Source of the DNA: Octopus bimaculoides
Lineage: Eukaryota
DNA: 63,428 nt
Assembly (NCBI RefSeq): GCF_001194135.2
Contig: NC_068999.1
Location: forward strand, 36,972,879-37,036,306
Direction: 5' to 3'
Shown: positions 9,729-46,199 of the stretch, piece by piece
Position numbering within the stretch: the stretch's first letter is position 1
Layout: every line of letters begins with the position of its first letter
The notes under the pieces: model-generated
The model's database searches: none
Seen by the model: only the letters and a program-made list of their open reading frames with translations
Told to the model about the DNA's origin: nothing
Program-made: the position numbers and the translations under genes

Positions 9729-10360
9729 TCAGAGAAATTTCCCAAACACTGTCCCAACGGAAATAAATACAAATGCTAACCCTACACCTTCTTTATAGCC
9801 ATATTCTGAGACTGGCAAGTCATTGGAACGATATAACTCTACCAGTTTCCAACAACTCACCAGGAAGTGGGCTAAATCAGGAATCATTAAAGCAACATTT
9901 CGTACATTTTGGAATGTTCGTCCATGTGCATAGATTACATGTGTTATGAATTGGTCCATTCCACTGAGCAAGATGTGTATTGTGCTAATGCAAATGATGA
10001 AAAATATCTTCTTGAAGGTGACGGAATTGCGAGAGTCACACATGTTTAGGACTATTGCAGTAACAATCATTTCGGTGATCATGAAGTAGATGTGGTGGTA
10101 GAAGTATGGATAAAAATCTTCGTTGAAGTAGTTAAATATGGACCACCATGAATAATAATGAGGATAGATGTTTATGACAAACAGACTGAACATCACCCAG
10201 CGGACATGTATCCGAGAAAATATTAAGCTGTATATGTATTTTACACTTTCGTATGTTATTGCTACAAAGAATACAGTGAAAATCCAAACTCCGAATGTCT
10301 GTGGCGTTGCGTTGAAGTAGATGTGTTTGTACAAAATGATTCCTTGGTTTTCATAGGCAC
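9729..10360 (-). CDS. Terminal coding exon of an uncharacterised multi-pass (~7 TM) membrane protein
   Basis: 632-nt open frame from a CTAG acceptor (10361-62, after a long pyrimidine tract) to TGA at 9729-31, phase 1. Translation GAYENQGIILYKHIYFNATPQTFGVWIFTVFF..PHYYSWWSIFNYFNEDFYPYFYHH..HILLSGMDQF..PDLAH..FGKFL* contains six hydrophobic segments. The ORF extension to 10469 runs into SINE/intron sequence. Confidence 0.9.
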
Positions 10361-10389
10361 CTAGAGGAGGAAGGAAGAAGAAAGGAATT

Positions 10390-10840
10390 AATAATGATTT
10401 CGAATTTTGGTACAAGGCCAGCAATTTTGGGAGCAGGGGTAAGTTGATTACATTGACCCCAGTGGTCAACTGGTACTCATTTTATTGACCCTAAAGCACG
10501 AAAGGTAAAGTCGACCTTGACAGAATTTGAACTCAGAATGTAAAGACAAATGAAATATCACTAAGTATTTTGCCTGGCATGCTAATGATTCTGCCAACTT
10601 GACACCTTAAGAAAAGAATTAATAATCATTTCTACTATAGACACAAGGCCTGAAATTTTAGGGGTGGGGTCTAGTTGATTAAATCGACCCCAGTGCTCAG
10701 CTGGTACTGATTTTATCGACCCTTGAAAGTATGAAAGGTAAAGTTGACCTCGGCAGGATTTGAACTCAGAATGTAAAGATGGACGAAATACCACTAAACA
10801 TTTTGCCCAGTGTGCTAATGATTCTGCCAGCTCACTGCCA
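10390..10840 (-). mobile_element. Two tandem SINE family A copies
   Basis: The same family A core occurs twice, immediately inside the intron acceptor of the membrane-protein gene. Confidence 0.8.
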
Positions 10841-12539
10841 TAATAAGAAAAGATGAAGACTAAAGAAATATTTTGAGTTCATTTATTAGCAACATTAGAT
10901 GGAAAATGTTCAGTGAGAAGNNNNNNNNNNNNNNNNNNNNNNNNNNNNNNNNNNNNNNNNNNNNNNNNNNNNNNNNNNNNNNNNNNNNNNNNNNNNNNNN
11001 NNNNNNNNNNNNNNNNNNNNNNNNNNNNNNNNNNNNNNNNNNNNNNNNNNNNNNNNNNNNNNNNNNNNNNNNNNNNNNNNNNNNNNNNNNNNNNNNNNNN
11101 NNNNNNNNNNNNNNNNNNNNNNNNNNNNNNNNNNNNNNNNNNNNNNNNNNNNNNNNNNNNNNNNNNNNNNNNNNNNNNNNNNNNNNNNNNNNNNNNNNNN
11201 NNNNNNNNNNNNNNNNNNNNNNNNNNNNNNNNNNNNNNNNNNNNNNNNNNNNNNNNNNNNNNNNNNNNNNNNNNNNNNNNNNNNNNNNNNNNNNNNNNNN
11301 NNNNNNNNNNNNNNNNNNNNNNNNNNNNNNNNNNNNNNNNNNNNNNNNNNNNNNNNNNNNNNNNNNNNNNNNNNNNNNNNNNNNNNNNNNNNNNNNNNNN
11401 NNNNNNNNNNNNNNNNNNNNNNNNNNNNNNNNNNNNNNNNNNNNNNNNNNNNNNNNNNNNNNNNNNNNNNNNNNNNNNNNNNNNNNNNNNCCCTTAAATT
11501 AAAAAAATTTTTTTTTTTTTTTTGCATAATTGTACAAATTCCCATGTGTAGAACAAAAATTCACAAAAATTTTCTGAAAATTCCAAGAAATAAGAGTTAT
11601 TAGTGGATGAAATACCTCTAAGCATTTTGCCCAGTGTGCTAACGATTCTGCCAGCTCACTGCCATAATAAGAAAAGATGAGTTATTAGGTGTTATAGGTG
11701 GTGCTTGAAACCAGAATTTTGCCTTCTATCGATTTTGGAAGAATGAAAGGAGGAAGACAGCAGAAAATGAAAAAAAAAAACATTGATGTACATACCACGG
11801 AAGACGGTGTCAAAACAGGAACAAGTGCAGCCAGAACGATCAACAGGAGCTTTATCTGGTACCCAGATTAATTTGTAGAAGACAGCTGTGAAAATATTAG
11901 GATAATTAAGAAGATGAAAGGTTTAACTGTGATAGTTGGGAAGAAAGGTAGAAAATGGTTATTTGAGGTTTAAAACTCTTGGAATCATCAAATATACTGA
12001 ACACAGGCATGGCTTTGGAAGTGCAGGAATGGTTGTGTAGTTAAGTGTTTGCTTCCTGACAACATAGTTTCAGAGTCAGTCTCACTGCATCTCACCTTGG
12101 GCAACTGTCCTCTACAATAGCTTCAGGCCAACTAAAGCCTTGTTAGTGGATTTGACAGGCAGAAACTGAAAGAAGCCCATCATGTATGTGTGTGTGTCCC
12201 CGTGTCCTTGTCTTCACATTACATGATAGTTATAAATGATTGGCATGTTATACAAGCAGTGTCATTCATTTTCAATATTGTGAAAACATGTCTGGCCATG
12301 AGGGAAATATTACCTTACTTGAAACCTCCGACAATCTTTCTTGCCAACCTCTGAAAACCTCTCTCGCCAACCTCCAATAATCTCTCCCTCCTCCAGCTGA
12401 CAGTCTTTTTAAATACTTTTCCATGGCAGGAAATACACCTTCTGCGGCAGTTATAACGAAATTGCTTTCTTATATCAGAATAAAGCGTTTCAACAGAACG
12501 TCTTTATCCCCAGGAATTACCGGGTACACCAGCTTGTAT

Positions 12540-12572
<33 letters not shown>

Positions 12573-12731
12573 NNNNNNNNNNNNNNNNNNNNNNNNNNNN
12601 NNNNNNNNNNNNNNNNNNNNNNNNNNNNNNNNNNNNNNNNNNNNNNNNNNNNNNNNNNNNNNNNNNNNNNNNNNNNNNNNNNATATATACCAATATATAT
12701 ATAAACACTCCGTATAGATACATATATATAC

Positions 12732-12766
<35 letters not shown>

Positions 12767-13099
12767 CATAAACATATATATATATATAAACACTGTCTCT
12801 CTTTCTCTTCCCCTCCTCTACCTCCCTCTGTCTCGCCAACACTCCACACCTCCCTCTCTTTCCTCATATCACCCTCTCTCTTGCCTTCATATCTCCCTCT
12901 CTCTTGCCTTCATATCTCCCTCTCTTTCCCTATTCCCCCCTCTGTGTTTCTTCTTTTCTACCTCCCTCTATCTCTCACTTCCTCTCTTTCCTCTACTCCC
13001 CCTCTGGGCTTAAAAAACGAAGATGGCACCAAAGTGGGAGAAGAAAGAATTGAATCTTCTGTTGTGAGCATAGATGATTGCTAGCAGTAATCCGGTAAA

Positions 13100-14010
13100 C
13101 AACATCATCATTGAATGACCAGTTCAAAAGTGTCTTAACCACCCCATTGGAAACCAGACAAGTCAATGAACCAGTGGACTTCTTTGCCGCCTCACTAGCA
13201 AGGCAATCATGATGGAATACATCGACATTAGCGAAGATGATATACTACTAGCCATAGATGAGGTGGACGCAAACTAAACTGCTGGTCCTAATGGTTTCCC
13301 AACAACCCTCCCCAAATCATGTGAGCATGCCCTGGCAAAACCCCTCCAGAGCTTTCTTGCAAATGGCAGACTGCCAAGCAAGCTGAAGGAGGGAATAATA
13401 ATGCCCAATCCATAAAGGGGGAAGCAGAGCAGATACCAAAGACACATCAGCAAAGTCATGGAACAGATAGTCAGAGGGAAACTAATCACATTCCTTGAAG
13501 GAAATAACTTGCAGAGTGATACCCAGCATGGCTTTTGACCAGGTAGGAGCTGCCTGACCCAAATCTTACAACATTATGACTGGGTGTTGAGACAATTACT
13601 TAACCACTCAAGTGTGGATGTAGTATACCTTGATTTTGCAAAAGCTTTTGACAAAGTGGATCATGTATGATATGCCACAAACTGCGTGATCTCAGCATAG
13701 CTGGAAAACTTGGAGAGTGGTTACATGACTTTCTGAAAGATAGAAGACAGGCAGTAGTGGCCAATGGAGCCACCTCAATGAAAACACAAATAGTGAGTGG
13801 CATTCCACAGGGCACTATCTTGGGACCACTGTTTTTCATAGTGGCCCTCTCAGATATGCTCTCAACTGCCCAGATAGCCACCCTTGCTAGCTATGCAGAG
13901 GATACGAAAGTCTCGCAGAAAATACAGAACCCCAGCGATGTTGCACATCTGCAGCAGGAGTTGGACTCAATTTACAGATAGGCTGAGGATAATAATATGC
14001 AACTTAATGA
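13100..14010 (+). mobile_element. CR1/Jockey-group LINE reverse transcriptase fragment (decayed)
   Basis: YLDFAKAFDKVDH, GIPQGTILGPLFF and YAEDTK (degenerate YADD) motifs with stops and frameshifts. The RT breaks off at ~14010. Confidence 0.85.
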
Positions 14011-14016
14011 TCTTTT

Positions 14017-14067
14017 CAGGGTTAGGGTTTTAGGGTTATGGTTAGGAGGTTAGGGTTAGGGTTAGGG
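14017..14067 (+). repeat. Interstitial telomeric-type repeat (TTAGGG)n running into a gap
   Basis: tcagggttagggttttagggttatggttaggaggttagggttagggttaggg, followed by N. Confidence 0.8.
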
Positions 14068-15079
14068 NNNNNNNNNNNNNNNNNNNNNNNNNNNNNNNNN
14101 NNNNNNNNNNNNNNNNNNNNNNNNNNNNNNNNNNNNNNNNNNNNNNNNNNNNNNNNNNNNNNNNNNNNNNNNNNNNNNNNNNNNNNNNNNNNNNNNNNNN
14201 NNNNNNNNNNNNNNNNNNNNNNNNNNNNNNNNNNNNNNNNNNNNNNNNNNNNNNNNNNNNNNNNNNNNNNNNNNNNNNNNNNNNNNNNNNNNNNNNAATG
14301 AATCAGGGACCGGGGGTCCCCCCATTCGTCCCTCCCCCTCTCCCGAACCAAAAAATAAGGGATTTGCAGCATATTAGGAGGCCAGGGTACTTGATTCCAC
14401 GCAAAAAATCCGAGGGTTTTTTTTTTTAGTGAAATACGCGCGGTTGTTACTCTGAAAATTTACCGAAGTTTTATAGAGTAATCTCCCTTTAATAATTTTC
14501 TGGGAAGATTCTACTTCATGAGATGTAATTTTTTTATTATTCAAGAAGCTTCGCGTTTTTTTTTTTCTTAGTGAAAATCGTGCGTGTGTTACTCTGAAAA
14601 ATTACCAAAACTTCTTGCAAGATAGATCATTCAACTATTTTAGCTACAGACCACAGACTACTACACTTATCTTATATTCTATTAACTTTGCAACTTTTTA
14701 AGCATAAAAATCTTCCAGAACAGTCAAACATCCATAGAGATACAGGAAAAATAATTTTGAGGTACAAAAATCTTATTTACTTATTGTTATTAATGTTTAT
14801 CAGAAAAAATCAGCATTCATCGAATGAAAATGAAAATGTTGTTGAGAGAGAGATAGAAAGCGAGAGAAATAGAGAGAGTGTGTGCACGCGCGTCTGTAGA
14901 TAGAGAGAGACAGGCAGAGTTCATCAATAAAATGAAAAGGTTTTTGTTGAGAGAAAGAGGGCGAGAGGCGTTTTTTGATACCACTCCCTCTCTCATTGTT
15001 ATTACCACTTTGTCGCTTCCCTTTTTTTACTCTTACTTACACTCACTGCTACTCCCTTACAAGTTCATTATTATAATGT

Positions 15080-15400
15080 TGTTGGCACTCCGTCGCTTAC
15101 GACGACGAGGGTTCCATTTGATCCGATCAACGGAACAGCCTGCTCGTGAAATTAACGTGCAAGTGGCTGAGCACTCCACAGACACGTGTACCCTTAACGT
15201 AGTTCTCGGAGATATTCAGCGTGACACAGTGTGACAAGGCTGACCCTTTGAATTACAGGCACAACAGAAACAGGACGTAAAAGTGAGAGAAAGTTGTGGT
15301 GAAAGAGTATAGCAGGGTTCGCCACCATTCACCTGCCGGAGCCTCGTGGAGCTCTTAGATGTTTTCGCTCAATGAACACTCACAACGCCCTGGGCCATTG
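15080..15400 (-). mobile_element. SINE family E
   Basis: The reverse complement of 15330-15400 matches the sequence following the tRNA-like head at 38868-38985. (AAT)n-like tail. Confidence 0.75.
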
Positions 15401-15652
15401 CGCCTCCACACATTTGAGATACACGTGTATATAGTTTAATCAATTCAGTTATTAGTTATTTTTTTAATGTTTTCAGTTTATTTTGTTTGTGGAAGTATTT
15501 TCGTTTTGTTTTAACATACAGCCATAGAAATCATGCCAAACGAGATTGGAACCTGGTGTAGCTCCCCGGCTCACCAGTTTCTGGTCAAACCATCTAACCC
15601 ATGCCTGCATGGACAAATGGATGTTAAATGAAGATGATGATGATAATGATGA

Positions 15653-15710
<58 letters not shown>

Positions 15711-16687
15711 CATACAATAGGCTTCTTTCAGTTTCAGTCTACCAAATCCAATCATAAGGCTTTGGTAAACTCAAAGCTAAAGAGGAAGACACTTGTCCAA
15801 GGTGCCACACAGTGAGACTGAACCTGAAACCATGTGGTTGAGAAGTAAACTTTTTACCACATAGCTAATAACTGAATTTCTCAAAGAAACCATTAAAATA
15901 TTTGAAGAAAATAAGGGAATAAATTTCATGCCAGCAAGTTAAGCTGAAATGAGTAGACTGATATCTGAAACATTATTAACATAAATTATATCCAGTTTCT
16001 ATGTTGGCAGTCCAAACAGTTCATAACTGGAGTTACTGCCTCTGAGATGCCTTCTTATACATTTCAGTTTTCATGGCTGAATGCACTTCCTAAAATTAAC
16101 TACTCTACAGAAAATGCACTTAGCATAGAGTGTCCTAGATGTATTTTTCCATGGCACCAGCAATGGTGAAGTTGCCTTACACCCAGCAGGCTAAAGACTC
16201 CTCAGTATTACTCTACAGTACTACTGTTCATTTAAGGTAGCAGATTACAAAGGGAATAGAAAAGCAATGACTGGAGAGCTAGTGGAAGTGAAAGCTAGAT
16301 GAGGTGGTAATGGAAGATAGACAGTATTGGCAGCTACATGTTTGTTGAGCTGAGAGAAAGATTGAATAATGGATACTAATGTGTATGTATATATATATAT
16401 ATAGATATGAGTTATTTAGACATTAACAAATTTATTAGAATATTTAGCTGAAGATCAGAATAGAGTATTCTTTACTCTTAACTGTGAAACGATCGTACTA
16501 AATTAACTAAAGGCAGGTGGTTTTTTTACTCTTCTCTACTGTTTTTTGTTCTGTGTGTATCAAAAATATCGCTATCAATCTGGAGTAATAATTTGTAGTT
16601 TTGAAATCAGTAGTTCTTTGACTGCTATTTCTGAATTCTCAGTATGTTGGAGAAGCAGGTTACTGTCAATCCCTATATATTTATGAT

Positions 16688-16721
<34 letters not shown>

Positions 16722-17961
16722 AGAGAAAATTGGTATGTGAAAGCATGTGGTTGGATGTATAAAAGATAAACAAGAGTGAAAAAACTACAGAAGGTTTGTG
16801 TTACATGGTTAAAGTATATATTTAAAATATGTCAGAAAAATGTTATAAAATTTTTTTGGTATATAACCATTGTATTTGGAGAAATAACCGGTTTTGTGTT
16901 GTCTTTTCAAATTTCTCCCCAAGAGCGTAGACATGTTACCATGAAGTAGAGAAATTTCCTAGTTTCTATCACTGCTATCATTTTAATCTTGATTTCAAAA
17001 TGCTTGTATGGGTGGACAAGTCTTTTCCAGCGTTATATGTCGCAAACTGACAGTCTTCTGTCATCTCATTTGTAAGGTATGACATCTTGAAACCAATTTA
17101 TCCCATGTTATCCTCTTTCACAAGTTACATCCACTTTAAGTGACTTGCACTTCTTTATACAACTATCATTGTATATTCACAAAATAAGCTCATACTTGTA
17201 CAGTCTTCTTTCTTGCACATTATATATAATGCTGTTATGTCCCACTTTGCAATCACTCAATTACAGAGTGAGAAACCTTGTAAAAGAAGTTCTTTCAGTT
17301 GATAAATGTTAGGTACTGTGGCTAATTCCTAGCAGTGAACCATGGACTCTTACAAAGAAATTATCAAACAGGATAGATGACTGTTATACAAGGATGCTAC
17401 AAATGGCCTTAAATGGAAAATGGCAGCAAAGTATAACAAATGAATGCCTTTATAGAGACCTGCCAAAAGTTAACAAGATCAGGCAAAGACAATTGTGACT
17501 ATCTGGTCACTGTGAGTACCACCATGAATTAGAAGCATCCAAATTAGTCTGGTGGAACCCACTTCATGGTGATGTAAGAAGAGGAATACATCATCACACT
17601 TACATCAACAACTTGATTGCAGACACTGGCCTGGAATGTATCCAGGACCTTCAAGAAGTGATGTTGAACTGAGAAGTGTAGTGGGTGAACTTTGTTGCTG
17701 CAGCCCGGGTTGGAATATAGCTATGAAAAAAAAAAAATCCCACTTTTCTCTCACATCATCTGTACAGCTCCAAGAACTACATTATCAGCATATTGAAGTT
17801 ATCTTAGACAGGTGTTATCGAACTCCTTTGCTATGCCTTAGAGGGGTATACTAAAAAGAAGGCTGAGGACTGGTCCTTGGTAGATCCTACTCGCAGGCCA
17901 AATTCATTTTGATAATTCTCACTTTGCTAACTGAACACCTCAGTTATACAAGCCATTCATT

Positions 17962-18717
17962 TACCCCTCGTTTCCTTTGCAATCACTAGATTATGGAGTA
18001 TGAAACCTTGTAAAAGGCCTTCTTTCGGTTAACAAATGCTAGGCACTGTGGTTAATTCTTAGCTAAGTATGTCTCCTGTAGTTGTCTCACTCGGAAGAGG
18101 TCATTGGTAATACCTCTTCTTGACACAAAATCAAACTGCATCTCATACAGCCTGATTCACTTGTGAACTCTTCCAATAACTTTCAAAACCTGGTCCATCA
18201 ACACAATGCCTCTGTCATTTCCTCTCTCTAATTGCATCTCTTTTGCCCTTGTAATAGTTTATGAGTATACTGCTATACAAGTCATTGGGTTAGATTCTTT
18301 TCTGTACTACCTAATTGACTATGCATGTAACTAGTGCATGACCTACCTAGCAAGTATTTTCAACATCTTAGTGACCGCTTGACAGTTCAGCTGCTTTATT
18401 TGAATGAAAATCAACAGTTAAGTAGGGAGGAGTTGAAATATTTAATTCGGGGAATCAAATAATTTAATAAGATACACTAGTACTAAGGAAAACATCAAAC
18501 CACCACCCCCATATAAAAAAAACAGACATGTTTCAGTCTTATTAGACCTCCTCAGCTAAGCATACATTTCATTGTACTTGCTAAAAGAGTGAATAGAGTA
18601 CAGGAGACATACTCAGCTAAGAATTAACCACAGTGCCTAGCATTTGTTAACCGAAAGAAGGCCTTTTACAAGGTTTCATACTCCATAATCTAATGATTGC
18701 AAAGGAAACGAGGGGTA
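17962..18717. repeat. 119-bp near-perfect inverted repeat with ~520-bp spacer (foldback/MITE-like)
   Basis: 17962-18080 versus the reverse complement of 18599-18717 differ at only ~2 positions, with TA at the ends of both arms. An older diverged copy of the arm lies at ~17240-17335. Confidence 0.85.
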
Positions 18718-19096
18718 GTGTTGTAATAATCAATAAGCAGGATTACAGTATTGTAATATGTGTAGGCAAGGGAGAAGTAACACAGTTTCATTAACAACAA
18801 AAATCATGGCTGTGTGGTAGCTTGACTTGCTAGAAATAGCAACCAAATCTCCCTCATATCATATTGTAACCTTAAAAAAGAAAGAAGAAAGTAAACCTAC
18901 CAACCTAAGCTGGCATGGAAAATGAACATTAAATGAACAAACGTTGGACAATGTAGTCTTAGATATACAAAGAAGTTGAGATGGTCATAGCTGGAACAAC
19001 TGATAATAAATCCACACAATCAGGGTTGTATTGAGGGATCTACAACACAAAACATATAAATATACACAAGCATAAATATGTTTAGAAGGGACTCAC

Positions 19097-19295
19097 CAAT
19101 ATGTAGAAAAGGGATCAGAATTATAAATATTACTGCAAATATGAAAGGAAGAGCTTTCTTTTTTATTCCATCAAAAGGAGGACAACCTTGGTAATGAAGC
19201 TTTGTAAGGCGCCGTTCCACATAGTCTTGGAATCGGTTGTTCAAGGAAGAGGTTTTGTGATTTGACAGGTTATACATCTTCTCGTAAAGGTACTT
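19097..19295 (-). CDS. Internal coding exon of the uncharacterised membrane protein (first TM helix)
   Basis: TTTCAG acceptor (19296-97) and GTGAGT donor (19096). 199 nt, phase 0 to 1: KYLYEKMYNLSNHKTSSLNNRFQDYVERRLTKLHYQGCPPFDGIKKKALPFIFAVIFIILIPFLHI-G, in phase with the 10360 exon. Confidence 0.8.
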
Positions 19296-19899
19296 CTGAA
19301 ATTTGAAAAAATGTAAATATATCCATGTGTACGAGAGAGATACATGTATGTGAGAGGGAATGATGGAATGAGAGAAGAGAGAGAGAGAGAGAGCAAAGGA
19401 GATTGAGAAGAGAGAGAACGAAGGAGAGGGAGAGAGAAAAGAAAGCTGGGTATTCACCCTTTAGCATTCAAATTTCTTTGTCAAATATATTGCTTGTTTA
19501 TTCACATTGTTTATTCACATCATGCATTATCTTATAGCTTTGAGATTTAGATGTGACTGTTCATCTTTACAATGAGATTTTAGGATCTGTGTAAGAGGCA
19601 GAATCTGGCTGGTTTGAATATAAAATTGGTAGAATATTTGGGCCGGATGTGGCTGGTTTAAATTCTAAAGAGTTAAAGGAATCTGTTAAAGCGTATAGGA
19701 AAGGTGAATGTGCATCATACGGACATAAGATATGCCATGTTGCTAGGTGGGTGGATAGTGAACCATGCTGTGTGGTAGGTGGATAATGTACCGTGTTATT
19801 GGGTACATGATGGGCTATGTTGTTGAGTGACTCCTTTATGTCTGTCCACCACAAATATTGGAATTGTAAAACCACTAGAAATGGGGGGGGGGGGGGGGA

Positions 19900-21329
19900 G
19901 GAATTTTAAGTTAAAGTGTATCATGCACACAACCCCCATGCCTTGAAGAACATACCCAATGTATCTCTGTTTGTTATATGGATGGCTAATTCAAAAGCAT
20001 GGGTTACTGTTGTTGTTTTTGAGGATTGGTTCTTCAATCATTTTATACTAGAAGCAGAGAAGTACTGTAAAGAGAAGGGGATTCTTTTTAAGGTTTTACT
20101 TAACTTATACAAGGCTCCTGGCCACCCACAAAAGACCATAGATTTTGACCGCCATATACCTCCCACCAAACACCACGCCCTTTCTGCAGCCAATGGATCA
20201 GGGAATAATTGCTATCTTCAAGCGTTACTAGATGAAGCATACACTACGACAAGCAATAGCAGCAACTGATCTTGATGAGTTCATCACACTTCATGACTTT
20301 TGAAAGAAATACGGTATCTACAAGGCTTTATAGAACATAGCAACAGCATGGAATGATGTACAGAGGACAGCTACGAATGGTGTATGGAAGAAGTTGTACC
20401 CTCAATTCGTGAATGATTTTAAGGGGTTTGATAATGTTGCCATTAACAAAATGTTGGCGACTACGAGCAAAGAACTGGAAATAGATTTGGAGGATTTTAC
20501 AGATTTATTTGAAAAATACAAGCAGCCCTTGACGAACGAGGATTTGATAGAGCTTCACGGGCAGCAAAATAAAGATAAAGAAGAAGAAGAAGCTGAACCT
20601 GAGCCACGTGACTTTACCATTAGGAAAATGCAGCAAGCATTTGCATATATCGAAAAAAGTCTTTCTATGTTCAAGGATATGGATCCAAATGCTTAACGCT
20701 TTCCAAGATTATAGGGGCTTGTCATGAAGCTTTTGCTCCTTATAATTGTAATCCTCGAGGAAAAGAAGACATTTCAAGGAACACTCAACCGGTTTTTTTA
20801 AATGCATCGAACAAGAACAGCCAGAGCCAGCCGTTGATGTTGACGATTCAGTCACCTACATCCACGATGTAAACCACCAAATTGTATGTACGTATTGGTA
20901 AATTTAAAATAATTTAGTTCTTTTTTTTTTGTTTGTTTTACTATTGCAAAATAATAATAATTACCGAATTTGTTTTTTAAGCTTAAAAACAGCTTTTTTT
21001 CTTTTTTTACCATGTTTTGTCACAAATCACATTCACAAATAAAGCATCCGCGATGTACGGTAAACACCGCCAAATTGTATTCATAAATTTAGATGACTTT
21101 GTTTTTACTGTACTGGATTAAAAAATAAAAATTGTTTGCAAGCTTAAAATAGGTTTTTATTAACCATGTATTATTGAAAATGTATTCATAAAGTACAGAG
21201 CTCGGAATGGTTATTATCGGTTTAGCCTAGAGACAAGTAAATTCGGCCTAGCCTAGCCTAGAGACAAGTTAATTCGGTTTAAGTAGTGTCTCCTGGAATC
21301 AATTAACGACGTAGGGTGATGTATGCCTG
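19900..21329 (+). mobile_element. Tigger/pogo DNA transposon, 5'-truncated and decayed
   Basis: TIGD1/Tigger-like peptides SKAWVTVVVFEDWFFNHF, APGHP and LQPMDQGIIAIFKRY. The right TIR ..GTATGCCTG ends at 21329, followed by TA. Confidence 0.85.
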
Positions 21330-22214
21330 TACAGGCCTACTTTATGAGCAATGGTCTGGAACTAAGGAACTAAATAACTAACACACACACACGAACAGGC
21401 CTTCACTCAACAATGCAGGCAAGATCACTAGCTGTCTTATCAACAATACGGACACATAGCGTGTAATGATTGTAGAATGAGGAAACGAACAGGAACTTCT
21501 TCAATAAAAAAAAAAATTTCTTTACAACCTTTTCTACTCTAGGCACAAGGCCCAAAATTTTGAGGGAGGGGATCAGTCAATTAAATCGACCCCAGTATGC
21601 AACTGGTACTTAATTTATCAATCCCGAAAGTATGAAAGGCAAAGTCGACCTTGGCGGAATTTGAACTCAGAAATACGAAATACCGCTAAGCATTTCGCCC
21701 GGCGTGCCAACATTTCTGTTAGCTCGCCGCCTTGTTTTCTTTACAACCTTGGCACCGAACAGACAGCGACCAGTCAAATAAACACTAAAACACCAAGAGA
21801 GAAAAAGATTAACGAAGAAATATAGCGGATGAAAATGGACAAGTTATTGTAGACAAGTAATGACAGGTAGAGAGAGATACCTGAAAACCTGATATTTCTC
21901 TTTGACAAAACCTAAGTAAAAATTGAAAATCCTATACTTACACACAAACTATTAAACCACATGCCTGTAATGTTTTGTTTTTGATGTTAAAATATAACAA
22001 AAGCCAGAGGAAGTAAAGTTGCTGGTGGATAAAAATGATAAATAATGTGTCGTAGGTGTTTGAGGAGAAGAGAAAGTTGACTGATTACGAGTTTGTCCTT
22101 GTTTATAGTTAAATCAAAGTCAATCCTGAACGAGCAGAACTATTAATAAAAGACGTATTTTCAGATATTGTATGTTTTAAATACTTTATATATATATATA
22201 TATATATATATCAC

Positions 22215-22383
22215 ATTTTCTAAGCAATAATGTTGATGGTTTTCAATGTATTTTTGAGAGCGAGAGGTACTAAGGAATGAATGCTTGTACAATTCACAGG
22301 TGTCTTTGTTTAAGACAGTAGGATGTAATTTTAGGCTGATACTTCCCGCAAGTTGAGCAAATACACAGAGACTCCTTGATAAA
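22215..22383 (-). CDS. Candidate upstream coding exon of the membrane-protein gene
   Basis: Open frame (L)SRSLCVFAQLAGSISLKLHPTVLNKDTCELYKHSFLSTSRSQKYIENHQHYCLEN. The GTGATA donor (22214) is phase 0, matching the 19295 exon. Two possible phase-2 acceptors (exon start 22383 or 22374). Splice signals are weak. Confidence 0.45.
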
Positions 22384-22490
22384 CTTGACACATTAAAAAA
22401 AGGTTTTTAATTAGTGAAGGCCAAGTTGGAAGAACGACTGCTGCAATTATAATATGGGGAGCATTTTATTCAAAATCCAAATTTGGATCA

Positions 22491-28853: not shown

Positions 28854-31191
28854 GTACGTGTAAACTAATTTCACCTCAAGCAAAGCTATCAGCTCTATTC
28901 TATGCATTTCTTTTTTTTAAAAATTTTTGTAATATGCAAATATTTTTCTCTTGCTAAGTTTGTATATTGATTCCAGGCAAAACCAGAGCCATGCCTTAAC
29001 CCAGTATTTGACAATTATTTATTTTATTAATTTTCAGTATTTTATATTATTGATCATTAGTATTTAAGTGGTACTTTTGGAACTGACCCAAGTACTTGAA
29101 TGAAACTTACTGTATTATCCTCACAAGGATAAAGGACAAAGTCCATCCTGGTTGGATTGGAATTTAGAACATAACGAGATGTAACTAAAGTCGATGAAGT
29201 GTTTTGTTTGACATCTTCATCATCGTCCTCCTCGATTAACATAAACTATCCATACTGGCACGAGTAGGATGNNNNNNNNNNNNNNNNNNNNNNNNNNNNN
29301 NNNNNNNNNNNNNNNNNNNNNNNNNNNNNNNNNNNNNNNNNNNNNNNNNNNNNNNNNNNNNNNNNNNNNNNNNNNNNNNNNNNNNNNNNNNNNNNNNNNN
29401 NNNNNNNNNNNNNNNNNNNNNNNNNNNNNNNNNNNNNNNNNNNNNNNNNNNNNNNNNNNNNNNNNNNNNNNNNNNNNNNNNNNNNNNNNNNNNNNNNNNN
29501 NNNNNNNNNNNNNNNNNNNNNNNNNNNNNNNNNNNNNNNNNNNNNNNNNNNNNNNNNNNNNNNNNNNNNNNNNGCATTCAAGGAACAATAATAGAATTGA
29601 GTGGGGACAGGATCAACTTGAAGAAATTGCAAAAAGAGTATCGGGCACTGAATACAGAAATTTTGGTTTGAATCTCAAGCCTTTAGTTTTTCAGTCTACC
29701 ACTTTCCCAACTGAACTCTTTCAGATACCACAATGCGAATTATAGCTGACCAACATAAGACAACAGCTGAGACATCATAGGTTGGCTGATTGTGATAGTG
29801 AACACTATTGTGCAGGAGCTTCTGTATTAAGATTTCATTTTCAGTTTGAAGCAAACATTATTCTTATTTTTTTTGTTTGACTTCAGGGTTAACCTTTTAG
29901 CAGACCTGTAAGCAAAAGCATTCCTGCTTTATTATATTTTGTTTCTTTCAAGCATCCTGTATGTACAACTGCATTATCAATGTCCTTCTGTTTTTTTAAA
30001 GATAGTAGCATGTAACATGAGATAATTGGATGCTATTTTTACCAATTTGAATGATCTTTTAGAGATTTCGTCATAGACTTAAAACTATAAGTAAATGCTT
30101 TTTCCACAAGTTAACCCTAATCAGGACTATGACCAAGGACATTCCAATCATGGCCATCCTATGTTATTATTCAAGGTGCAGAGCATTGGGAATCAAGTCA
30201 TTCGATATATTCTGCCTTTCTTTGTGTGTGGTGATTCTAGATGGAAATTACTGTTGCATTTAGCATACTGAATAATCATGCAGAGCAGTGGTTCCCAAAT
30301 TCTTCACAACTAATGATTCCTTTCATAAAAAAATTGAATTTTCTCGAAAACCCCAAGATTTTGAAAGGTTTATTTACTTAATAGATATTGAGCTTAGCTT
30401 GCACAATCCGGGTACTATGTTTTTGGATGCTAAGTGTCTCTGTAGAGCTCAAGCAGAAAACTATTGATGCAGACAGTTCCTCAACATCAAACCAGATCAT
30501 TTCATTTAAGTTGTACCATGAGTGCGGTAATGTCCAATTTACACCTACCCCTCCTTGAAGATATAAGACATTTGGTTTAGACAAATTACATTCTTATAAG
30601 TATCTGCAATGGTATCTCGTTTTGTTTGACATCTTCATCATCGTCCTCCTTGATTAACATAAACTATCCATACTGGCACGAGTAGGATGATTTGGCAGGA
30701 TCCATCAGGTGTGGAAAATGAATTGTGCACCTATATCTATTTTAGCATGGTGTCTATGGCTGGACATCCGTCATAATGGCATCCACTTTACATCCCAGCA
30801 TGTACCATTTAGCCTTGCACTCAACATCATTAGCGTCATAGTCATTACCATCATCATCATCATCATTTCCTCCTTCACCACCATCTTCATTATTGCCAGT
30901 GGCAACATCATCATTGTCATTGACATCAATATAACCATCATTATCATCATCAACATTGAATATTAGATATTCCTTGCTGTTATGAGTCAGACAGTTTTCC
31001 TTCAGTAGAGCTTTAGAAAGAGATGTTAGTTGACTCTTATGATATGGAGATTCAGTGTACAGTTTCTAAAACTCAGGCAACCATTGGAAATTTAGCCCAG
31101 CATTCTATGACATTTTCTACCTTTCTACTTATTAATTTTACAATGTTACTGAAAACTTGCAAAGAATTTATCATTGTCTTCTCTTCTGAAG

Positions 31192-31443
31192 GTTGATGAA
31201 GGCCAGAAGCCCATGCGACCTTATCAAAAGATCGATATGTTGAAGCAGTTCCTTGTCCATGACCAGCATGTACTTAGATTCTACTGTCTCTGGGATGACT
31301 CGGATGCAATGTTTGGTGACCCACACAAGATGGTGCTTCTCTACTTCCTCTCTGATGACACAATAGAAATCCATGAAGACATCCTGCCTAACAGTGGCCG
31401 TGACCAAATTTCAGTTTTCATCAAAAGAGGGAAATTACCAAAA
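31192..31443 (+). CDS. EFHC2: EFHC2 exon (start of DM10-2)
   Basis: AAG|GTT..AAA|GTAAAT, phase 0-0: PMRPYQKIDMLKQFLVHDQHVLRFYCLWDDSDAMFGD..YFLSDDTIEIHEDILPNSGRD..KRGKLPK. Confidence 0.95.
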
Positions 31444-32409
31444 GTAAATATATTTTGTGCTTTTCTTCTTCAACAAAATTTGGTTATTTCAAACAATTTT
31501 CTACTGCATCATCTGCTAAACCTCTGTGTTGCTGGGATGTGTACAGCTTTGTGTGTTCTTTTTTGGCTGTTAGGAGCAGTGCAAATGCTTCCCAGTATTG
31601 TATTGCATCTTTTGTTATGGAGTCTGATGCAGTCTTTGGTTGTATTAGCATTTGTGCTGTATGTGTAATGCATTGGGTACGTGGCCAGATGGTGCTTGTT
31701 TATTTTCTTTGAAACTTGGTCTATTTTAGTTTGAGGCATTTTCCCCTTTCACAGAATATATATCACCAGATATTTGCAAGAGTTCTTTCCAAAATTGTTT
31801 CCCTTATAACAGTATTTCTTCTTCTCCATATTTGATATACTTGTTTTATTATTCATGTGTGTTTTGGGTATAGCTTGGCAGTGTAGAATGCATTTCATAC
31901 TTCATATATAGTCGTCATCTGTCCACTGTTATCTTTTGGTTTGTTTTGCTCTTGTGCAGTGTTAAGTTTTTAGCACAACACCATCTCTAGAAATGTGCTA
32001 TGGCTTCTTTTGTATCTTGATTGCCCGAGGCTCACAAATCAAAATTCACCTATTTGTTTTCTTACTTTTATTACTGAGCATATCTGCTTTTTTCTCTCTG
32101 TTTAAGATGAGATATGCTGCATCTTATATTCATTAATTCTCTCTTAAGTTGTTTAAACACCGTGTTCTATGTTGTCTTGTTCATATGTGAAAGATTGTAT
32201 GTGTATGTGTGTGAACTGTATAAACATTACATTTGTGTTTATGTTTAAAAATGTAAATACATATATGATTATTATTTGTACTTGCATTTCTTTTTTTGTT
32301 TTTTAATAGGGATGTCATATTTTCATCTATTGCTTCATTTTGTACATCACACATTTCACTTAAGGAACAATCAATAACAAGTTGACAAAAGTTCCTCACT
32401 ATTTCCTCT

Positions 32410-33760
32410 CCTGTTCCTTACATAGACAAAACTTTCTTGAAAATCCTTGCTGTACCAAGGAGTGCTGTTGTTTGCATGACTTGTGACTTTGCATCAGTAA
32501 AGATTTTATTTACACACTCCTCAAAACTGCCTGATATGCATCCCAATGCTCCCATCTTCGCTGAAATCATTAAGACTAGACAACACAAGATGATATGGTC
32601 CGCTGTCTCATTGTGCTGGTTGCACATTCTGCATTTTGTGTTAGAGCCTGTTTTCATTATTTTGCTTCTATAATTGTTTGTAGTCAGGCATTAATCTTGT
32701 GCAGCGAGAAGCAATCGTGTTTCTGCTTTTAGTCTAGCAAATTTAAGCTGCTTTTATTGTCTTTTACTTAAGCTCACTTCCTCTCTGTCAAGCCTTATAA
32801 GTTATTTGCCACGGAGTGGTTTTTATCTTCATTTCTCTTTCAATCATCATCATCATCATCATTGTTTAACGTCCGCTTTCCATGCTAGCATGGGTTGGAC
32901 GATTTGACTGAGGACTGGTGAAACCGGATGGCAACACCAGGCTCCAATCTGTTGTTTCTTGTCTCTTTGACCATCTCTGCTGTGATATCATCTGCGGTCA
33001 GTGTATCAGTGTGGTTTGTTTCTGTTTTGTATTCTGTTGCCTCTTGTGTTACCTTATTACATGCAGTAGTCTTCCACTCTTTGTTTCAAAGTACTTTCCT
33101 AGTCCAACTGTTGTTATTTTATAACTCTCTATCTGTATTAGACCACAGTCTCCTGAGCAGGGTAGATACATTGTCTGCATCTGCTTTGGGGTGGTCATTT
33201 TGGTACACTGGTTAAGTTTTCTGTTTTTTCTGCCTAGGGTTCTCAATTCACTGATATTCTATTTTATTATGTTAAAGCTGTACTTTATGACTGGTATGGC
33301 TAGCGTGTTTATCCCTGTTATTTTATTTTTAGCATTAAGCTCAGTGTTTAATACTACTTTAACTCTTCTAAAATACTCTCCTAATTTTCTATTTCATTTC
33401 TGTGTTGTATTTTAGCTGTTTTGTCTGTTCCTAGATATTTGTATGAGTGATTATGGTCTAATTCTCTTATTTATGTGTCTATGTTGAGAGCAGTATTTTC
33501 AAGGTTGATTACTTCGTCTCTTCTCAATGTGACTTCAGCACATTTGTCCAGCCCCATGATCATTCTGATGTCCTTGCTAAAACAATGGAAAATTTTGACA
33601 AGGTTTCTTTGGTGTTTTAGTGAAAATTTTAAGGTCATCCATGTACAGGAGATGGTTTATTGTTTGTCTATACCACCTATAAACTTAGCAGGGTTAGAGA
33701 AAGGCAGCAAAGCAAGGGTGACAGTGAGTCTCCCTGTAAAATACCCTTTCTGATGGGTAT
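32410..33760 (-). mobile_element. R4/Dong-like (restriction-like endonuclease) non-LTR retrotransposon, decayed and deleted
   Basis: INHLLYMDDLKIF (RT) near 33620-33660, the CRMCNQHNETADHIILCC zinc motif and the C-terminal TALLGTARIFKKVLSM*. A family D repeat interrupts it at 32845-32950. Confidence 0.8.
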
Positions 33761-34600
33761 AGGGTAGGTTTTAATGACTTCTGAGTCATTTTTTAATGTT
33801 ATAATACTTTTCCACTTTGCCATTACATGTTTGATATATTTTAGTAGTAGTGTAGATAACTTATTATCATTTATGGTTTCCTTTCATTATAACTTTATTT
33901 CAGCTGCCTTTGTACTGTTGACCTCCTCCAGAGGCCAAGCGTAGCAAGGGCACTTTTGTTTTGCTCTGAATGCTAAAATCATCACCGTTGTGTTGTTACT
34001 ATTAATAGTAGTGGTATTTTTAAGGAGGTGATATGTCAGAATTGTTAATTTATCAGATGTAATACTTAATGAACATTTTACCTGTCTTTATGTTCTGATT
34101 TCAAATTTTGCTGAGGTCACTTTGGCCTTTCATCCTTTCAGGGACTATAATTATCAGCTGAGCACTGAGGTTGGTGCAGTCAACTAATCCTCTCATCCAA
34201 AATTTCAGGCCATGTGCCTATGGTTGATGGGATTATTATTATTTCATATATGACAACTGATTAGACTGTAACAAAAGATTCCTACCATTTGGCTACAATA
34301 AGTAGGATATGAACTCAGGATTTAAGATGCCAGAACAAATACTATAAGATTAGTTCAAGGCTATTATAGAAGACACTTGCCAAGAACTATATGGTTGAGA
34401 AGCAAACTTGTTGCCACACAGCCATACCTGTGCCTCCATCTTAAATGGGAAGTTCTCCAAAGACAAAACATGATAGTAGCTAGTATATTTATGTCCAAAT
34501 CTACTGAAATGTATTGACAATGAATAGGCGTGTCATTGCTCTGATTCTTGCTGTTAATTGTGCACATGACAAAATTAATCAATTATATTCCTTTATTCAG

Positions 34601-34705
34601 GTACCTGATGGTCTGCCTCTCCATGGTCAAAAGGTTGACCGAACAGTCTTAAATGTTTTTGGCTCAATGCATTCTAAAGGACGTTACATTCTGGACAACT
34701 TAAAG
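34601..34705 (+). CDS. EFHC2: EFHC2 exon (DM10-2 insert)
   Basis: TTCAG|GTA..AAG|GTAATA, phase 0-0: VPDGLPLHGQKVDRTVLNVFGSMHSKGRYILDNLK, comparable to the EFHC2 ..GQITDRAVLN.. region. Confidence 0.9.
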
Positions 34706-35619
34706 GTAATAAGTGTGAAGGTAGTTCTTTGTTTTTGTATCTTAATTGAGTATCTACATATAGAAGTGGAGTACTAACGAATAAGGCTAAATATAATGGT
34801 GGTTGCTTTTACATGGCACCAGCATGTGTGCTTTTACATGGATAGCACAAGCACAAACGAGCCTGCATCACTAAGATTTGTATGTATGTACGTGTATATA
34901 TGTATATATATATATATACACATACATATACTGTGTGTGTGTGTGTGTATTATCATTGTTGTTGTCAACACCACTTGTCAGAGTTTGGTTCATTTGAAGC
35001 TTCACTGATGCTTAAATTTGGCATTAATCCAATGGCGCAGTTGGCAAGGGAACTATTTGGTACTCCTCTTCAGCAACACACCTGCTCCAATCCCTCTATA
35101 ATACTATTGTCCTTTAAGATAAGGCATAAAGACACCTCTTTCAATATTATACCACAACTCAAATTTAGAGTCTTATTTTGTAAGTTGGTGACCTCACAAA
35201 CATTGCTGCCATATAAAAAGCATCTATTACACTGTAAATTGATTGACGTTTGGAAAGGCCTCCAGCCATACAATCTATGTTTGTTTGTTTGTATGTATAT
35301 ACTTATTCAGTTTTATTTCAAGATTTTTTACCAATAAAGAAAGAGCAAGTTTCTAACCTTGATCCAAACATCCTTCACTGGAATTTGAATAACATCAACA
35401 AGGTGTTTTTGTGTGTATGTATGTATATATATATATATATATATATAATTCAAATATAGGATAAAATCTTTAGAAGAATTTATTAAGTAGTTAGCATGAA
35501 AGAAACCTCATAAAGGAAAAATCCATTAATTATTCCCAATAAATATATTTATTTATATTAAGAGCATTACTATACATAAATGCCTCAAGCTAGGAGGGAC
35601 TCACTTCAATTACTCCGAT

Positions 35620-36450
35620 CTAATCAAGCAGTCCAAATGTTGGTATGAGTACTGGCACTGCAAACACATTGTAGACCACTGTTTTATTGAAAGCAGAGAC
35701 GTCTGAGATCTATATTTTCTTTATTTGGCTGTAATTTTCTTTTGTGACAGGTGTTTTGTTACAGGTGCCATTGTAAAATGTGTTTTCATCCACCACTAGA
35801 TACCTATAACATTACTCATCAGATATAGGGAATACATTTAAGCCATTGATGGAAATGTAGCTAGTCTGGTTTACCGTTTTCTCTCTTTTCACAACCATAT
35901 AGCAACATTTAATCTGACCACACCCCAGAACTATATCCTATGAGAATGTTGTAACCAAGTAAAAGTCTCTTTTTCATCTCATGCATATTCTTTGAAGCCA
36001 TCCACGAAGGAACAGAGTGCTATTTTGGTATTTCTGTTTCCTTGTAAACCAGTGAGATATCCTTCAGAATTCCTTAAAAAGCTTTCAGAAGATATAAACA
36101 GCATCACAGAGAGGCTATCCCCTTCGAATATGCCTCTGCAATACTTTATTTTACTAATGGTAATACAATCACTCTTTGTATTTAATTTCAGGTTGGCTAT
36201 ACCTTCAACTATGCTCGCTGGAACTTTAGCAAGTTAAAGGGCTTCTAACATCAATGCATGGGGGACAGAGTCAAAGGTTTTCTTGTAGTCCATCCACATT
36301 GAAACCAGGTTCCTGCACCTCTGACATTACAGTTTTGTTTCTTAACAATTGTTTGACAATTGATTGTACACATTGCTGTACCATCAATGTGGACTAATGA
36401 AGTAGCCTTTATATGGTTGCCTGATCTGCTAGGAACAGCAGCCAAGCTCT
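35620..36450 (-). mobile_element. Decayed RTE-type endonuclease fragment
   Basis: Frameshifted remnants resembling the LINE AP-endonuclease N..NG.YL..F and TWL motifs; heavily degraded. Confidence 0.45.
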
Positions 36451-37854
36451 TCCAAATTGCCTCCCCTCCCCATTTCTTTGAGAATGGATACAGTAGATAA
36501 CATGGTCAAGGATTTACTATACATAGGAAAAAGATGGGATGGTCACAGGCGGAATGTTTGGAATTATAGGTTTGCATGATCAAAGCTAAACTAAAAATGA
36601 AGACAACTAAAGCTAACCCTATTCACCGAAACCCCATTGATGCATCCTTTTTTATAGATAACAGTAGAAATGACAGAAAAGAAACAACATGTCTGTAGAC
36701 TAATGGCTGTACAAATAATGAGAAAAAAAGCTTTAGTGTTGTTGTTGTGATTGTCATCTTAACTCTTTACATACTGACTTCAAATCCTATCAGTCAAAGT
36801 TGCTATTTGTCCTTTTGGGGTCAATAGAATGGTTGGTTGATTGATAAAATGTTAGACCAAATACCTTGTAGTATTTGTTTTGGTTTTCAACACATTGAAT
36901 TCATCAGTGAACACAGTGGTGTGCAGAGTGGAGAATTTCTGCAGGCTTTCTATAGACAAAAAATTACCCAATACTGCAAAATGTACATGAGCTTTCCTTC
37001 TACAGAAATCTCATGAACAATAATCCATGAATGGCTTCAAATATGTTGTTGGTGTTTAGTCCCATATAAACCCAAAGTGAGTAGAACTATATGGAAAGCA
37101 TTTCCAGTTATAGTCTTCTAATCTTATTTGCAGACAATGTATGGTCAAGAAGTTCACATTACAACCCCACAACTTTACTTTCAGTCCCACTGTGTGGTAC
37201 CTTAGCTATCTTCTACTATAGTTTTGAGTTGACCAAACCCTTGTAACAGGATTTGACAGACAGGAACTAAAAGAAGCCAGTAGTACACACACACACACAC
37301 ATTTATGTATGTGTGTGTATTTGTGTCTCAATGTCTTGACATTGCATAATAGTTGTTAGTAAATATCACCACCATACAAGCAGTCTCATTCACTTCCGGT
37401 CTTCCTTGCAAACAGATCTGCCAAACGAGAAGTATTAAATTACTAGGAACCAGGTGATGGTTGTCAATGATAAAGGCATCTAACTGTAGAAAATTTGCCT
37501 CAGTAAATTCCCTTTACCTATCTCCCAGGCAAATATAGGAATGTGGTTTAAACTGTTGTGAGGCTGCTAATTCTAAAATGTCAAGTGATCCCATACAGGG
37601 TTCTTCAATGGCTCCATTTTTATATGTTATTGTTTTTGCTGTTGTTGCTGTTTAACTCCAACTTGAATTCTCCTTCTTTTCCAGCGCTAGTTAGAAATAC
37701 ATTATTCACAGTATCTTTCACTTTTTCCATAATAGTAAGATGTGATTCAAGAGAGATGTTGTTATCATTTCTAGCAGGCTGACCGACCGTGTTGTCTAGT
37801 AAGTGATGTATTTCCTTTAAAATGTAATTTTTGATGACTGATTTCATCATCCAG

Positions 37855-37993
37855 ACAGGTGAACCTGATATGTCTTACTATCATGCCTCTGATCTTCGTC
37901 TTGGAAATATTATCAATGTCTATAGTCGACCGTTCCTGCTTTGTGACTGTGATGGCTTCACAAAGGAATATTACAAAACCAATTATGGAATTG
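37855..37993 (+). CDS. EFHC2: EFHC2 exon (end of DM10-2)
   Basis: CCAG|ACA..ATTG|GTAAGT, phase 0 to 1: TGEPDMSYYHASDLRLGNIINVYSRPFLLCDCDGFTKEYYKTNYGI. Confidence 0.95.
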
Positions 37994-38103
37994 GTAAGTG
38001 ATTTACTTTCGTTTGTGTCAAATGTCATGAAATTTAAATAAAAGTGGGATTTAGCTAGATTTGCGAATCTCTCATGTGTGCATTAGTATGTATATAGGCA
38101 TAT

Positions 38104-38138
<35 letters not shown>

Positions 38139-38867
38139 GATTTTTTAATGTTCATGTTGGTAACAACCATACCAGCATGGAGAGTATATGCTAAATGATG
38201 TTATACAATAAAACTATCCTTATGTTACTAAGTTAAATTTGTTTTATCTAAACAAAAAATAGACACATGTCTCAGAATTGGTAAATATCCATGTGAGGTG
38301 TATACCACATGGAAGATTCAAAGGTGTTAAGACACAGAAGGCTCAATCATGCATAATACATACATATATGCAGTTGGGGTTTTGATTATAAACTTCTGCA
38401 TTCAATTCCTGGACCAGACAGTACATTGTTAACTTGATATTTGACTAGAATTTTGAATGTTTAACATCATTTATACATTAAAGAACAATTCCAACTTCAA
38501 AGAGCTACTCTATCATCTTATTCTGATGGATAAGAATACAGTCTATGAGAAGTGACATCCTCCAGTTGTTGTTTACATGGGGGTAACCAAAAGAAGCCAG
38601 AATTATTTTGCAATATTATTTTCTTTTCTTAGTTTTAAATGTTTACAATGTCATCACCTCCAAAGTTCTCTCCATTTGAAGCAATGCATCGGTTCAGATG
38701 TTTTCCACTCTTGCAAAGTGACGCCTTTCAACGCCTCTGTCATTTTTCCCCCTTCATCTCTTCCGCATCTGCAAAACGTTTTCCTTTAAGGACTTTTTTC
38801 ATTCAGGGGAACAGAAAATTTTGCAGAGAGCAAGATCGGCTGGAAAGGGAGGGTGGGTAAGCAATGG

Positions 38868-38983
38868 CCCAGTGGTTAGGGCAGCGGACTCGCGGTCATA
38901 GGATCGCGGTTTCGATTCCCAGACCTGGCGTTGTGAGTGTTTATTGAGCGAAAACACCTAAAAGTTCCACGAGGCTCTGGCAG
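38868..38983 (+). mobile_element. tRNA-derived SINE head (family E), truncated
   Basis: A-box TGGCCCAGTGG and B-box GGTTTCGATTCC, followed by the family E body. Confidence 0.75.
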
Positions 38984-38984
38984 G

Positions 38985-40020
38985 TGATAAGCCTATATGG
39001 CTAATTAATGAAATAAAGCAGGGTCATGCCATTTAGGGTCAAAAATTGTCCCGTACTCAAGGCAGTGCGCACAACCACATTGTCATGATGAAACCACCAC
39101 TCACCACTTTTCCACAAATCAGGGCATTTTGTCTCACTGCATCTAGTAGATGCTTCAGAACTGCAAACTAAAATGTCTGGTTAACAGTTTAATCAGATGG
39201 GACAAATTCAGTGTGGACAATTCCTTTTGCATTCATAAAACAAATCAGTATCATCTTCGCTTGACACACTTTTTGGGGGTTTGGTAGCATTGAATGCTCA
39301 CATTGGCTTGATTGCTGCTTCATTTCCAGGTTGTAGCCAAAACACCACCTTTTGTCACCAGTGAAAACCTTTAAGTAAAGGTCCAGATTAACTTCCAACT
39401 GTTCTTGCAGTTTATGACATGCATTCAGTTTTGTCTGCTTTTAATCTTCCTCGAGCAAGTGAAGGACAAATTTTGTTGCAACTCTTTTCATTAATAATTC
39501 CTAGCTCAAAAATTTGTTGGCAAAGCTCCATAACACCCCAGTCATATCAACCACTTCATTGACTGTTCGGTGATGGCTGTCCAAGATCAGTTCAGGAATT
39601 TTCATGTTTTCATTCGTTTGGGAGGTCAACAATCGCCCTGAACACAGTTGGTCTTCAAGTGATAAGTGACCATTCCTAAAGCGTGAAAACCACTCATAAA
39701 CCTGTGTTTTGCTCATGATAGCAGTGTCCTTGTAAACTGTTTGAAGCATGACAACTGATTTGGCTGCTGTTTTCCCCAGCAGAAAACAGAATTTCATGGA
39801 AGCACAGTGTTCCTTCATTTCAGCCATCACAAAAATTGATGAACAGAGGAGAAGCACTGCAATACAGTCACATTGCATCACAGTATGACCTCATGGGATG
39901 CTACCAGTCAGCAGGCTGATGCCTGAGGGCCCCATCAAGTGGCTTCTAGCTGTGGAAGCCTGAACTCCAACAGGCTTGGTCCACAGAAAATGTTTCTAGT
40001 TATTTTTGAGTAGCCCCTCG
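38985..40020 (-). mobile_element. mariner transposon, decayed, 3'-truncated
   Basis: MKFCFLLGKTA..MSKTQVYEWFSRFRNG..LED and FTGDKRWCFGY (TGDE-W.Y) remnants. TIR TA|CGAGGGGCTACTCAAAAA at 40022-40003. Confidence 0.85.
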
Positions 40021-46197: not shown

Positions 46198-46199
46198 AG

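Follow-up and report, generated by a model that had tools for sequence, protein, structure and literature searches.

An unnamed eukaryotic family of seven-helix membrane proteins with a conserved cysteine loop, represented by LOC106871771 of Octopus bimaculoides

Membrane proteins of the CREST superfamily (PAQR/AdipoR, alkaline ceramidase, Per1/PGAP3, TMEM8/myomaker and SID-1) have seven helices and polar His and Asp residues inside the bilayer. Proteins with a TLC (TRAM/LAG1/CLN8) domain, among them CerS/Lag1/Lac1, CLN8 and the TLCDs, place a six-helix core of ~200 aa after a first helix and an inserted loop. Here we describe LOC106871771, a gene of Octopus bimaculoides whose product resembles both groups in outline. 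It lies on the minus strand of a 63,428-nucleotide stretch of contig NC_068999.1, the whole of which we call the window. Both this gene and its orthologues carry the database label 'uncharacterized protein'. We find that the product belongs to an old, unnamed, eukaryote-wide family that is under purifying selection and is marked by an invariant cysteine loop and a small set of conserved polar residues in its helices.

The gene and its family

Using tblastn with homologous proteins, pattern searches and splice-site context, we resolved LOC106871771 into four coding exons, all on the minus strand, that encode a product of 313 aa. Every residue of this product equals RefSeq XP_052830807.1 (isoform X1; UniProt A0A0L8HC99). 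Exon 1 (21962-21942) begins at the ATG at 21962, encodes MWFNSLC (ATGTGGTTTAATAGTTTGTGT) in agreement with the N-terminus of isoform X1, and ends at a GTAAGT donor. Intron 1 (19296-21941) was set by its splice sites. Exon 2 (19295-19097, donor GTGAGT) encodes the cytosolic N-terminal region and most of the first transmembrane helix (TM1), and isoform X2 starts within it, at Met14. Beyond intron 2 (11886-19096), tblastn with orthologues located exon 3 (11885-11796), a 90-nt exon of phase 1 to 1 with acceptor ...TTTTCACAG and donor GTATGT, whose translation, AVFYKLIWVPDKAPVDRSGCTCSCFDTVFR, covers the end of TM1 and a CxCxC-F-D loop. Intron 3 (10361-11795) separates it from exon 4 (10360-9729), which supplies the later part of the extracytosolic loop (YKHIYFNAT), TM2 to TM7 and the TGA stop at 9729-9731. 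The assembly gaps at 12573-12682 and 14068-14296, together with interspersed repeats, fall in intron 2, and a third gap (10921-11490) falls in intron 3. All three gaps are therefore intronic and no coding sequence is missing; an exon concealed in them is ruled out, as the product is complete and equal to RefSeq.

A first-pass annotation of the window, made from the sequence alone, had proposed exons at 19295-19097 and 10360-9729. Both are real, with AG acceptors (...TTTCAG and ...CTCTAG, respectively) and a GT donor. It had also joined them directly, from 19097 to 10360. This join is in frame, with 276 codons to the TGA, but it leaves out the genuine exon at 11885-11796, and the direct splice is ruled out by the presence of the exon 3 segment in RefSeq and in every homologue, including one uninterrupted transcript-like contig. 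Because exon 3 is 90 nt long and phase-symmetric, skipping it preserves the frame. The in-frame splice was thus a trap for annotation: the exon that it passed over carries the family's signature motif, and the resulting peptide lacked CxCxC-[FW]-D, the most conserved element of the family. A candidate N-terminal exon at 22.2-22.4 kb (22187-22400, minus strand) proved to be non-coding. It lies upstream of the real start, is not conserved and is possibly 5' flank or untranslated region. It holds an open reading frame (ORF) of only 17 codons (MCQVYQGVSVYLLNLRE plus GT, a possible donor) with stops in all frames beyond, and the Octopus sinensis counterpart of this ORF has a 1-bp indel and has lost the GT donor. 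Within the same interval, just upstream of the start-codon region, is a (TA)n microsatellite (22180-22215, minus strand).

In O. sinensis the locus has the same four exons and stays collinear over the stretches where the gaps lie. The orthologue there, LOC115222212, is 92% identical to the window product, and exon 4 has a ratio of nonsynonymous to synonymous substitution rates of 0.16 between the two species, indicating purifying selection. The exon structure of the orthologue is the same in O. sinensis and Argonauta hians, and we see no difference in kind. The locus is a real, expressed-type and selectively constrained gene, already annotated in RefSeq, and we hold its identity, the gene model and the family assignment, taken together, to be close to certain.

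The family extends far beyond cephalopods. A word-indexed search returned 58 close relatives in molluscs, Lingula, a nemertean, Owenia and krill, and when 1.84 billion representatives were scanned in full with a hidden Markov model (HMM), 721 matched at E<=1e-3, 110 of them at E<=1e-30. Molluscs, annelids, flatworms, arthropods, amphioxus and hemichordates are all covered, with named animal members in Branchiostoma, Ptychodera, Lingula, Owenia, Macrostomum, Penaeus, Oratosquilla, Anabrus and Polyplax. Relatives in cephalopods include transcript-like contigs with uninterrupted ORFs. Outside animals, members occur in Acrasis kona (Heterolobosea) and Jimgerdemannia flammicorona (Mucoromycota). 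The protein is therefore not an orphan, as had been supposed, since its family spans protists and fungi to amphioxus; nor is the family confined to invertebrates, given its relatives in Heterolobosea, Mucoromycota, amphioxus and hemichordates. A motif scan that covered 185,579 prokaryotic genomes and IMG/VR, together with tblastn, found no bacterial, archaeal or viral relative. No vertebrate member was among the named hits, although vertebrate absence was not tested exhaustively. Because no vertebrate appears among these hits and no Pfam family exists, the family is likely absent from the usual model organisms.

The proposal that this is an uncharacterised family with about seven transmembrane segments was borne out, and we detected no relationship in sequence or fold to any characterised family. 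All members are labelled 'uncharacterized' or 'hypothetical' at source except for four Macrostomum lignano entries, which UniProt has automatically named 'TLC domain-containing protein'. M. lignano has at least 10 near-identical copies, and these are the only family members bearing a functional-sounding name, which the tests below do not back. Searches of the literature under locus names or motif strings found no papers, and no domain fusions were found in the longer members. The gene neighbourhoods of environmental homologues are sparse, on eukaryote-like contigs, and uninformative. One distant environmental member (454 aa) carries the family domain partly duplicated in tandem, with two CxCxCWDG motifs in one polypeptide. 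Octopods also have a paralogue outside the window (O. bimaculoides LOC106879219, O. sinensis LOC115222213), which is 288 aa long and ~65% identical. Its LOC number in O. sinensis adjoins that of the gene described here, and in O. bimaculoides it has a nearby accession number on the same chromosome. The pair looks like an octopod tandem duplication, with a single copy in the window.

Conserved residues and predicted architecture

Family-wide conservation was calculated with weighting over 162 full-length members. C93, C97, D99 and N183 are present in 100% of these, followed by N120 (98%), D265 (97%), Y114 and H232 (both 95%), E200 (94%), C95 and W176 (both 93%) and R257 (91%), with D239, Q240 and T199 at ~81%. 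The window protein conforms to this pattern. Its C93-T-C95-S-C97-F-D99 fits the C-x-C-x-C-[F/W]-D loop that follows TM1 throughout the family, and it has N183-[D/E] at the end of TM3, [T/S]-E200 in TM4, H232 in TM5, D-Q at 239-240, and R257 and D265 in TM6, all of which are 81-100% conserved. On the minus strand, exon 3 encodes C93 (11827-11829), C95 (11821-11823), C97 (11815-11817) and D99 (11809-11811), and exon 4 encodes N183 (10122-10124), E200 (10071-10073), H232 (9975-9977) and D265 (9876-9878). Four of the five universally invariant residues in a further alignment (A3) are those of exon 3, and an HMM built from A3 recovered 272 of 272 family sequences and 0 of 120 TLC proteins. Judged from these alignments, the conserved core is C93, C95, C97, D99, N183, E200, H232 and D265.

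The protein had been described as histidine-rich, and this description depends on which relatives are compared. Alignment A2, a close animal set of mainly molluscs to which a brachiopod, nemertean, annelid and krill also contribute members, shows no variation at H116, H171 or H232 and >=90% conservation at H72, H192 and H268. Among the 162 members the description does not hold: H171 falls to 52% (Asn in 29%), H192 to 64%, H193 to 25% (Gln in 72%) and H268 to 49%, and of the histidines originally noted only H232 stays deeply conserved. Such a pattern speaks against the ancestral function having been that of a zinc or haem site with several histidines. The more general observation that polar and charged residues sit within the helices stands, as conserved ones are present.

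The seven hydrophobic segments first read from the sequence match seven long helices in AlphaFold models. For the full-length O. sinensis orthologue, AlphaFold2 produced seven long helices and a hairpin at 100-118, with a mean predicted local distance difference test (pLDDT) score of 79 and a predicted template modelling (pTM) score of 0.71. The product of exon 4 of the window (TM2-TM7, 209 aa) was modelled with a pLDDT of 91 and a pTM of 0.87. The architecture consists of an N-terminal tail of ~54 residues, TM1, a loop of ~40 residues and a compact six-helix core, TM2-TM7; in the loop, a beta-hairpin (YKHxYFN) accompanies the C-x-C-x-C-[F/W]-D motif, which is invariant. Lys and Arg are concentrated ahead of TM1 and within the TM2-3, TM4-5 and TM6-7 loops, whereas the TM3-4 loop and the C-terminus are poor in them. 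From this we infer that the N-terminus is cytosolic and that the Cys loop and the TM3-TM4 loop, with N183-[D/E], are extracytosolic (luminal or extracellular). In the models, E200 (TM4), H232 (TM5) and D265 (TM6) would lie at roughly mid-membrane, and N183/D184, D239/Q240 and R257 would sit where TM3, TM5 and TM6 reach the outer surface, beneath the Cys loop. The very aromatic TM3 (YPHYYSWWSxFNY) probably lines that same side.

Function and competing explanations

Taking gene, family and function together, we consider our best explanation moderately probable: LOC106871771 encodes a member of a deep seven-transmembrane family whose most likely role would be that of an intramembrane enzyme or of a protein that handles ions or metals. 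In such a protein the buried invariant charges and the Cys loop would form one polar site open to the extracytosolic side. In an enzyme, which we favour, the substrate would be a lipid, something linked to a lipid, or a small amphipathic compound; it would enter from the outer leaflet and be acted on by a His-Asp/Glu pair, and the CxCxC-D loop would either bind a metal, structural or catalytic, or provide a nucleophilic cysteine. Charges at mid-membrane that are invariant across kingdoms seem easier to reconcile with a catalytic site, or with one for a ligand or ion, than with a passive scaffold. On the mechanism itself, hydrolase or transferase, our view is tentative: it is possible, at rather less than even chances. 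Several points weigh against an enzyme. Searches of Pfam, NCBIfam and PDB sequences with single sequences and profiles returned no match, and in Foldseek searches of both models against the PDB the best match had E=0.43 and TM-scores were <=0.30, leaving no neighbour to lend a mechanism. No homologue carries experimental annotation. The Cys loop is of low confidence in the full-length model (pLDDT 55-63), and the TM5-6 loop carries ~2 Lys/Arg, so that the topology is moderately supported. The suggested convergence of E200, H232, D265, N183 and the Cys loop is deduced solely from their depth along the modelled helices. Finally, a set of His, Asp, Glu, Asn and Cys residues suits a metal or cation transporter equally well.

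Such a transporter or channel, for a transition metal or small cation, could capture its ion at the CxCxC-D loop and pass it to a site made of N183, E200, H232 and D265. CxCxC motifs are typical of metal binding and the invariant residues are classic metal ligands, while the histidine positions that vary have Asn, Gln, Ser or Thr in other members, the pattern of a polar conduit, and the outer vestibule is aromatic and acidic (NEDFY and YYSWW). However, extracytosolic cysteines are likely to be oxidised, the family has no similarity in fold or sequence to any PDB or Pfam transporter, and hhalign of TM2-4 against TM5-7 gave no sign of an internal inverted 3+3 repeat (probability 0.2%); we regard transport as unlikely. 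Less likely still is a non-catalytic receptor, scaffold, or subunit or chaperone of a membrane complex, in which the conserved polar residues would be kept for the packing of helices or for contacts with partners. Small seven-transmembrane proteins without soluble domains are often adaptors, and paralogues have expanded repeatedly, as in the octopus tandem pair, the three or more copies in Lingula and the M. lignano set. Yet ligand receptors diversify, and it would be unusual for one to keep buried Glu, His and Asp and three Cys invariant from Heterolobosea to chordates. The sole Foldseek matches that could be cited for a receptor are G protein-coupled receptors at noise level (E 0.5-3, TM-score 0.14-0.30, thus E>0.4 and TM-score <=0.30 in each case), and we rejected a fold of that type. 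The enzyme is ranked first, followed by the transporter and then the receptor or scaffold.

The two described families that the protein resembles in outline fare worse. A very divergent TLC-domain, acyl-transferase-like protein would account for the UniRef label of the four M. lignano members, for the similar size (~200 aa and six helices) and for a 13-column likeness to the Lag1p motif (NEDFYPYFYHH vs RKDFGIMFLHH). In the family, however, the first His of this string is present in 64% and the second is Gln in 72%, and the inferred membrane side is opposite to that of the CerS motif. Pfam PF03798 had 0 matches in >60 members, M. lignano proteins included, even at E<=10, and found its positive controls CerS6 (2.6e-49) and CLN8 (1.4e-8). 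Probabilities from hhalign were 0.6% (CerS6), 0.17% (4-sequence TLC profile) and 0.14% (16-sequence TLC profile). Reciprocal HMM searches were negative apart from one match of a family member to the TLC HMM at noise level, a single hydrophobic helix aligned out of order, and the CerS6, Lac1 and Lag1 structures, although present in the PDB set, were not among the Foldseek matches listed. TLC membership is rejected on these Pfam, hhalign, reciprocal HMM and fold tests, and we assign the idea only a very small chance. A CREST-type zinc-dependent hydrolase or a bis-His haem-b protein, both raised in the first-pass annotation, is less probable again and largely refuted. Seven helices, six histidines conserved in the close animal set and an N-in/C-out orientation like that of PAQR/AdipoR speak for it. 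The same annotation had already doubted the CREST pattern, and rightly so: there are no conserved columns for SxxxH (TM2), Asp (TM3) or HxxxH (TM7) in the A2, A3 or 162-sequence alignments, and TM7 has no conserved His at all. No Pfam match was found to the HlyIII, ceramidase or Per1 families. The only CREST structure listed among the Foldseek matches was myomaker (8t06), with the full-length model, at a noise-level E=2.0 and TM-score 0.17-0.24; no CREST structure was among the matches listed for the high-confidence core model, and the same full-length model gave nothing significant against BFVD. A haem-b protein of the cytochrome b561 type needs at least two conserved pairs of transmembrane His, and is rejected because H232 alone is conserved at >=90% across the family.

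Returning to the enzyme and its nearest competitor, a broader reading deserves mention as a possibility that we put below even: that these proteins are an undescribed class of intramembrane enzymes or metal/cation handlers, perhaps as old as the last eukaryotic common ancestor, with their own seven-helix fold, a CxCxC-D loop and an Asn/Glu/His/Asp core, and that they were lost from vertebrates and standard model organisms. Loss from standard model organisms is suggested by the lack of a Pfam family, and such losses would explain why the family has never been studied. If the fold and chemistry are indeed its own, the family would represent a new kind of membrane enzyme or transporter, with a wide distribution that takes in marine invertebrates, some insects and crustaceans, early-diverging fungi and protists. 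The invariant C93, C95, C97, D99, N183, E200, H232 and D265 are immediate targets for mutagenesis. That the family cannot be placed in any known kind reflects ignorance rather than a demonstrated new mechanism, and since many 'dark' membrane families exist, its practical interest is moderate.

Surrounding sequence and comparison with known systems

An interspersed repeat of 100-160 nt occurs around and within the gene, at 24193-24089, 23637-23339, 21728-21575 and 10833-10673, and has ~8 matching sites (75-93% identity) across the 27 kb of the O. sinensis locus. Insertions of this kind account for the difference between the 7.2 kb of intron 2 in the window and its ~2 kb in O. sinensis. On the plus strand, opposite to LOC106871771, the neighbouring gene (31174-47194) consists of several exons and has at least two DM10 domains (PF06565, E=7e-21 and 5e-14); it is an EFHC1/EFHC2-like ciliary protein gene. 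Further along, an ORF at 62826-63220 (plus strand) adjoins an assembly gap. Its gag-like product has an acidic tail and includes a knuckle of CCHC type (CFARGEKGHMKARC). The ORF had no Pfam match at E<=0.01 and is probably a retroelement fragment.

Set against known systems, the octopus family shares with CREST proteins the seven helices and the polar His and Asp residues within the bilayer, and with PAQRs in particular a probable N-in/C-out orientation. It differs from them in lacking the defining Ser-x3-His, Asp and His-x3-His motifs, in having one conserved His, and in showing no similarity in fold or by HMM. Differences from the TLC proteins lie in the CxCxC-D loop, which has no counterpart there, in the HH of the TLC motif, which is H/Q in this family, and in the predicted membrane side of that motif, which is opposite. 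What the two have in common is a core of six helices and ~200 aa that follows a first helix and an inserted loop, and within it a local 'DFxxxxxHH' at the start of a helix and then, on the helices after it, a His at mid-membrane together with acidic residues.

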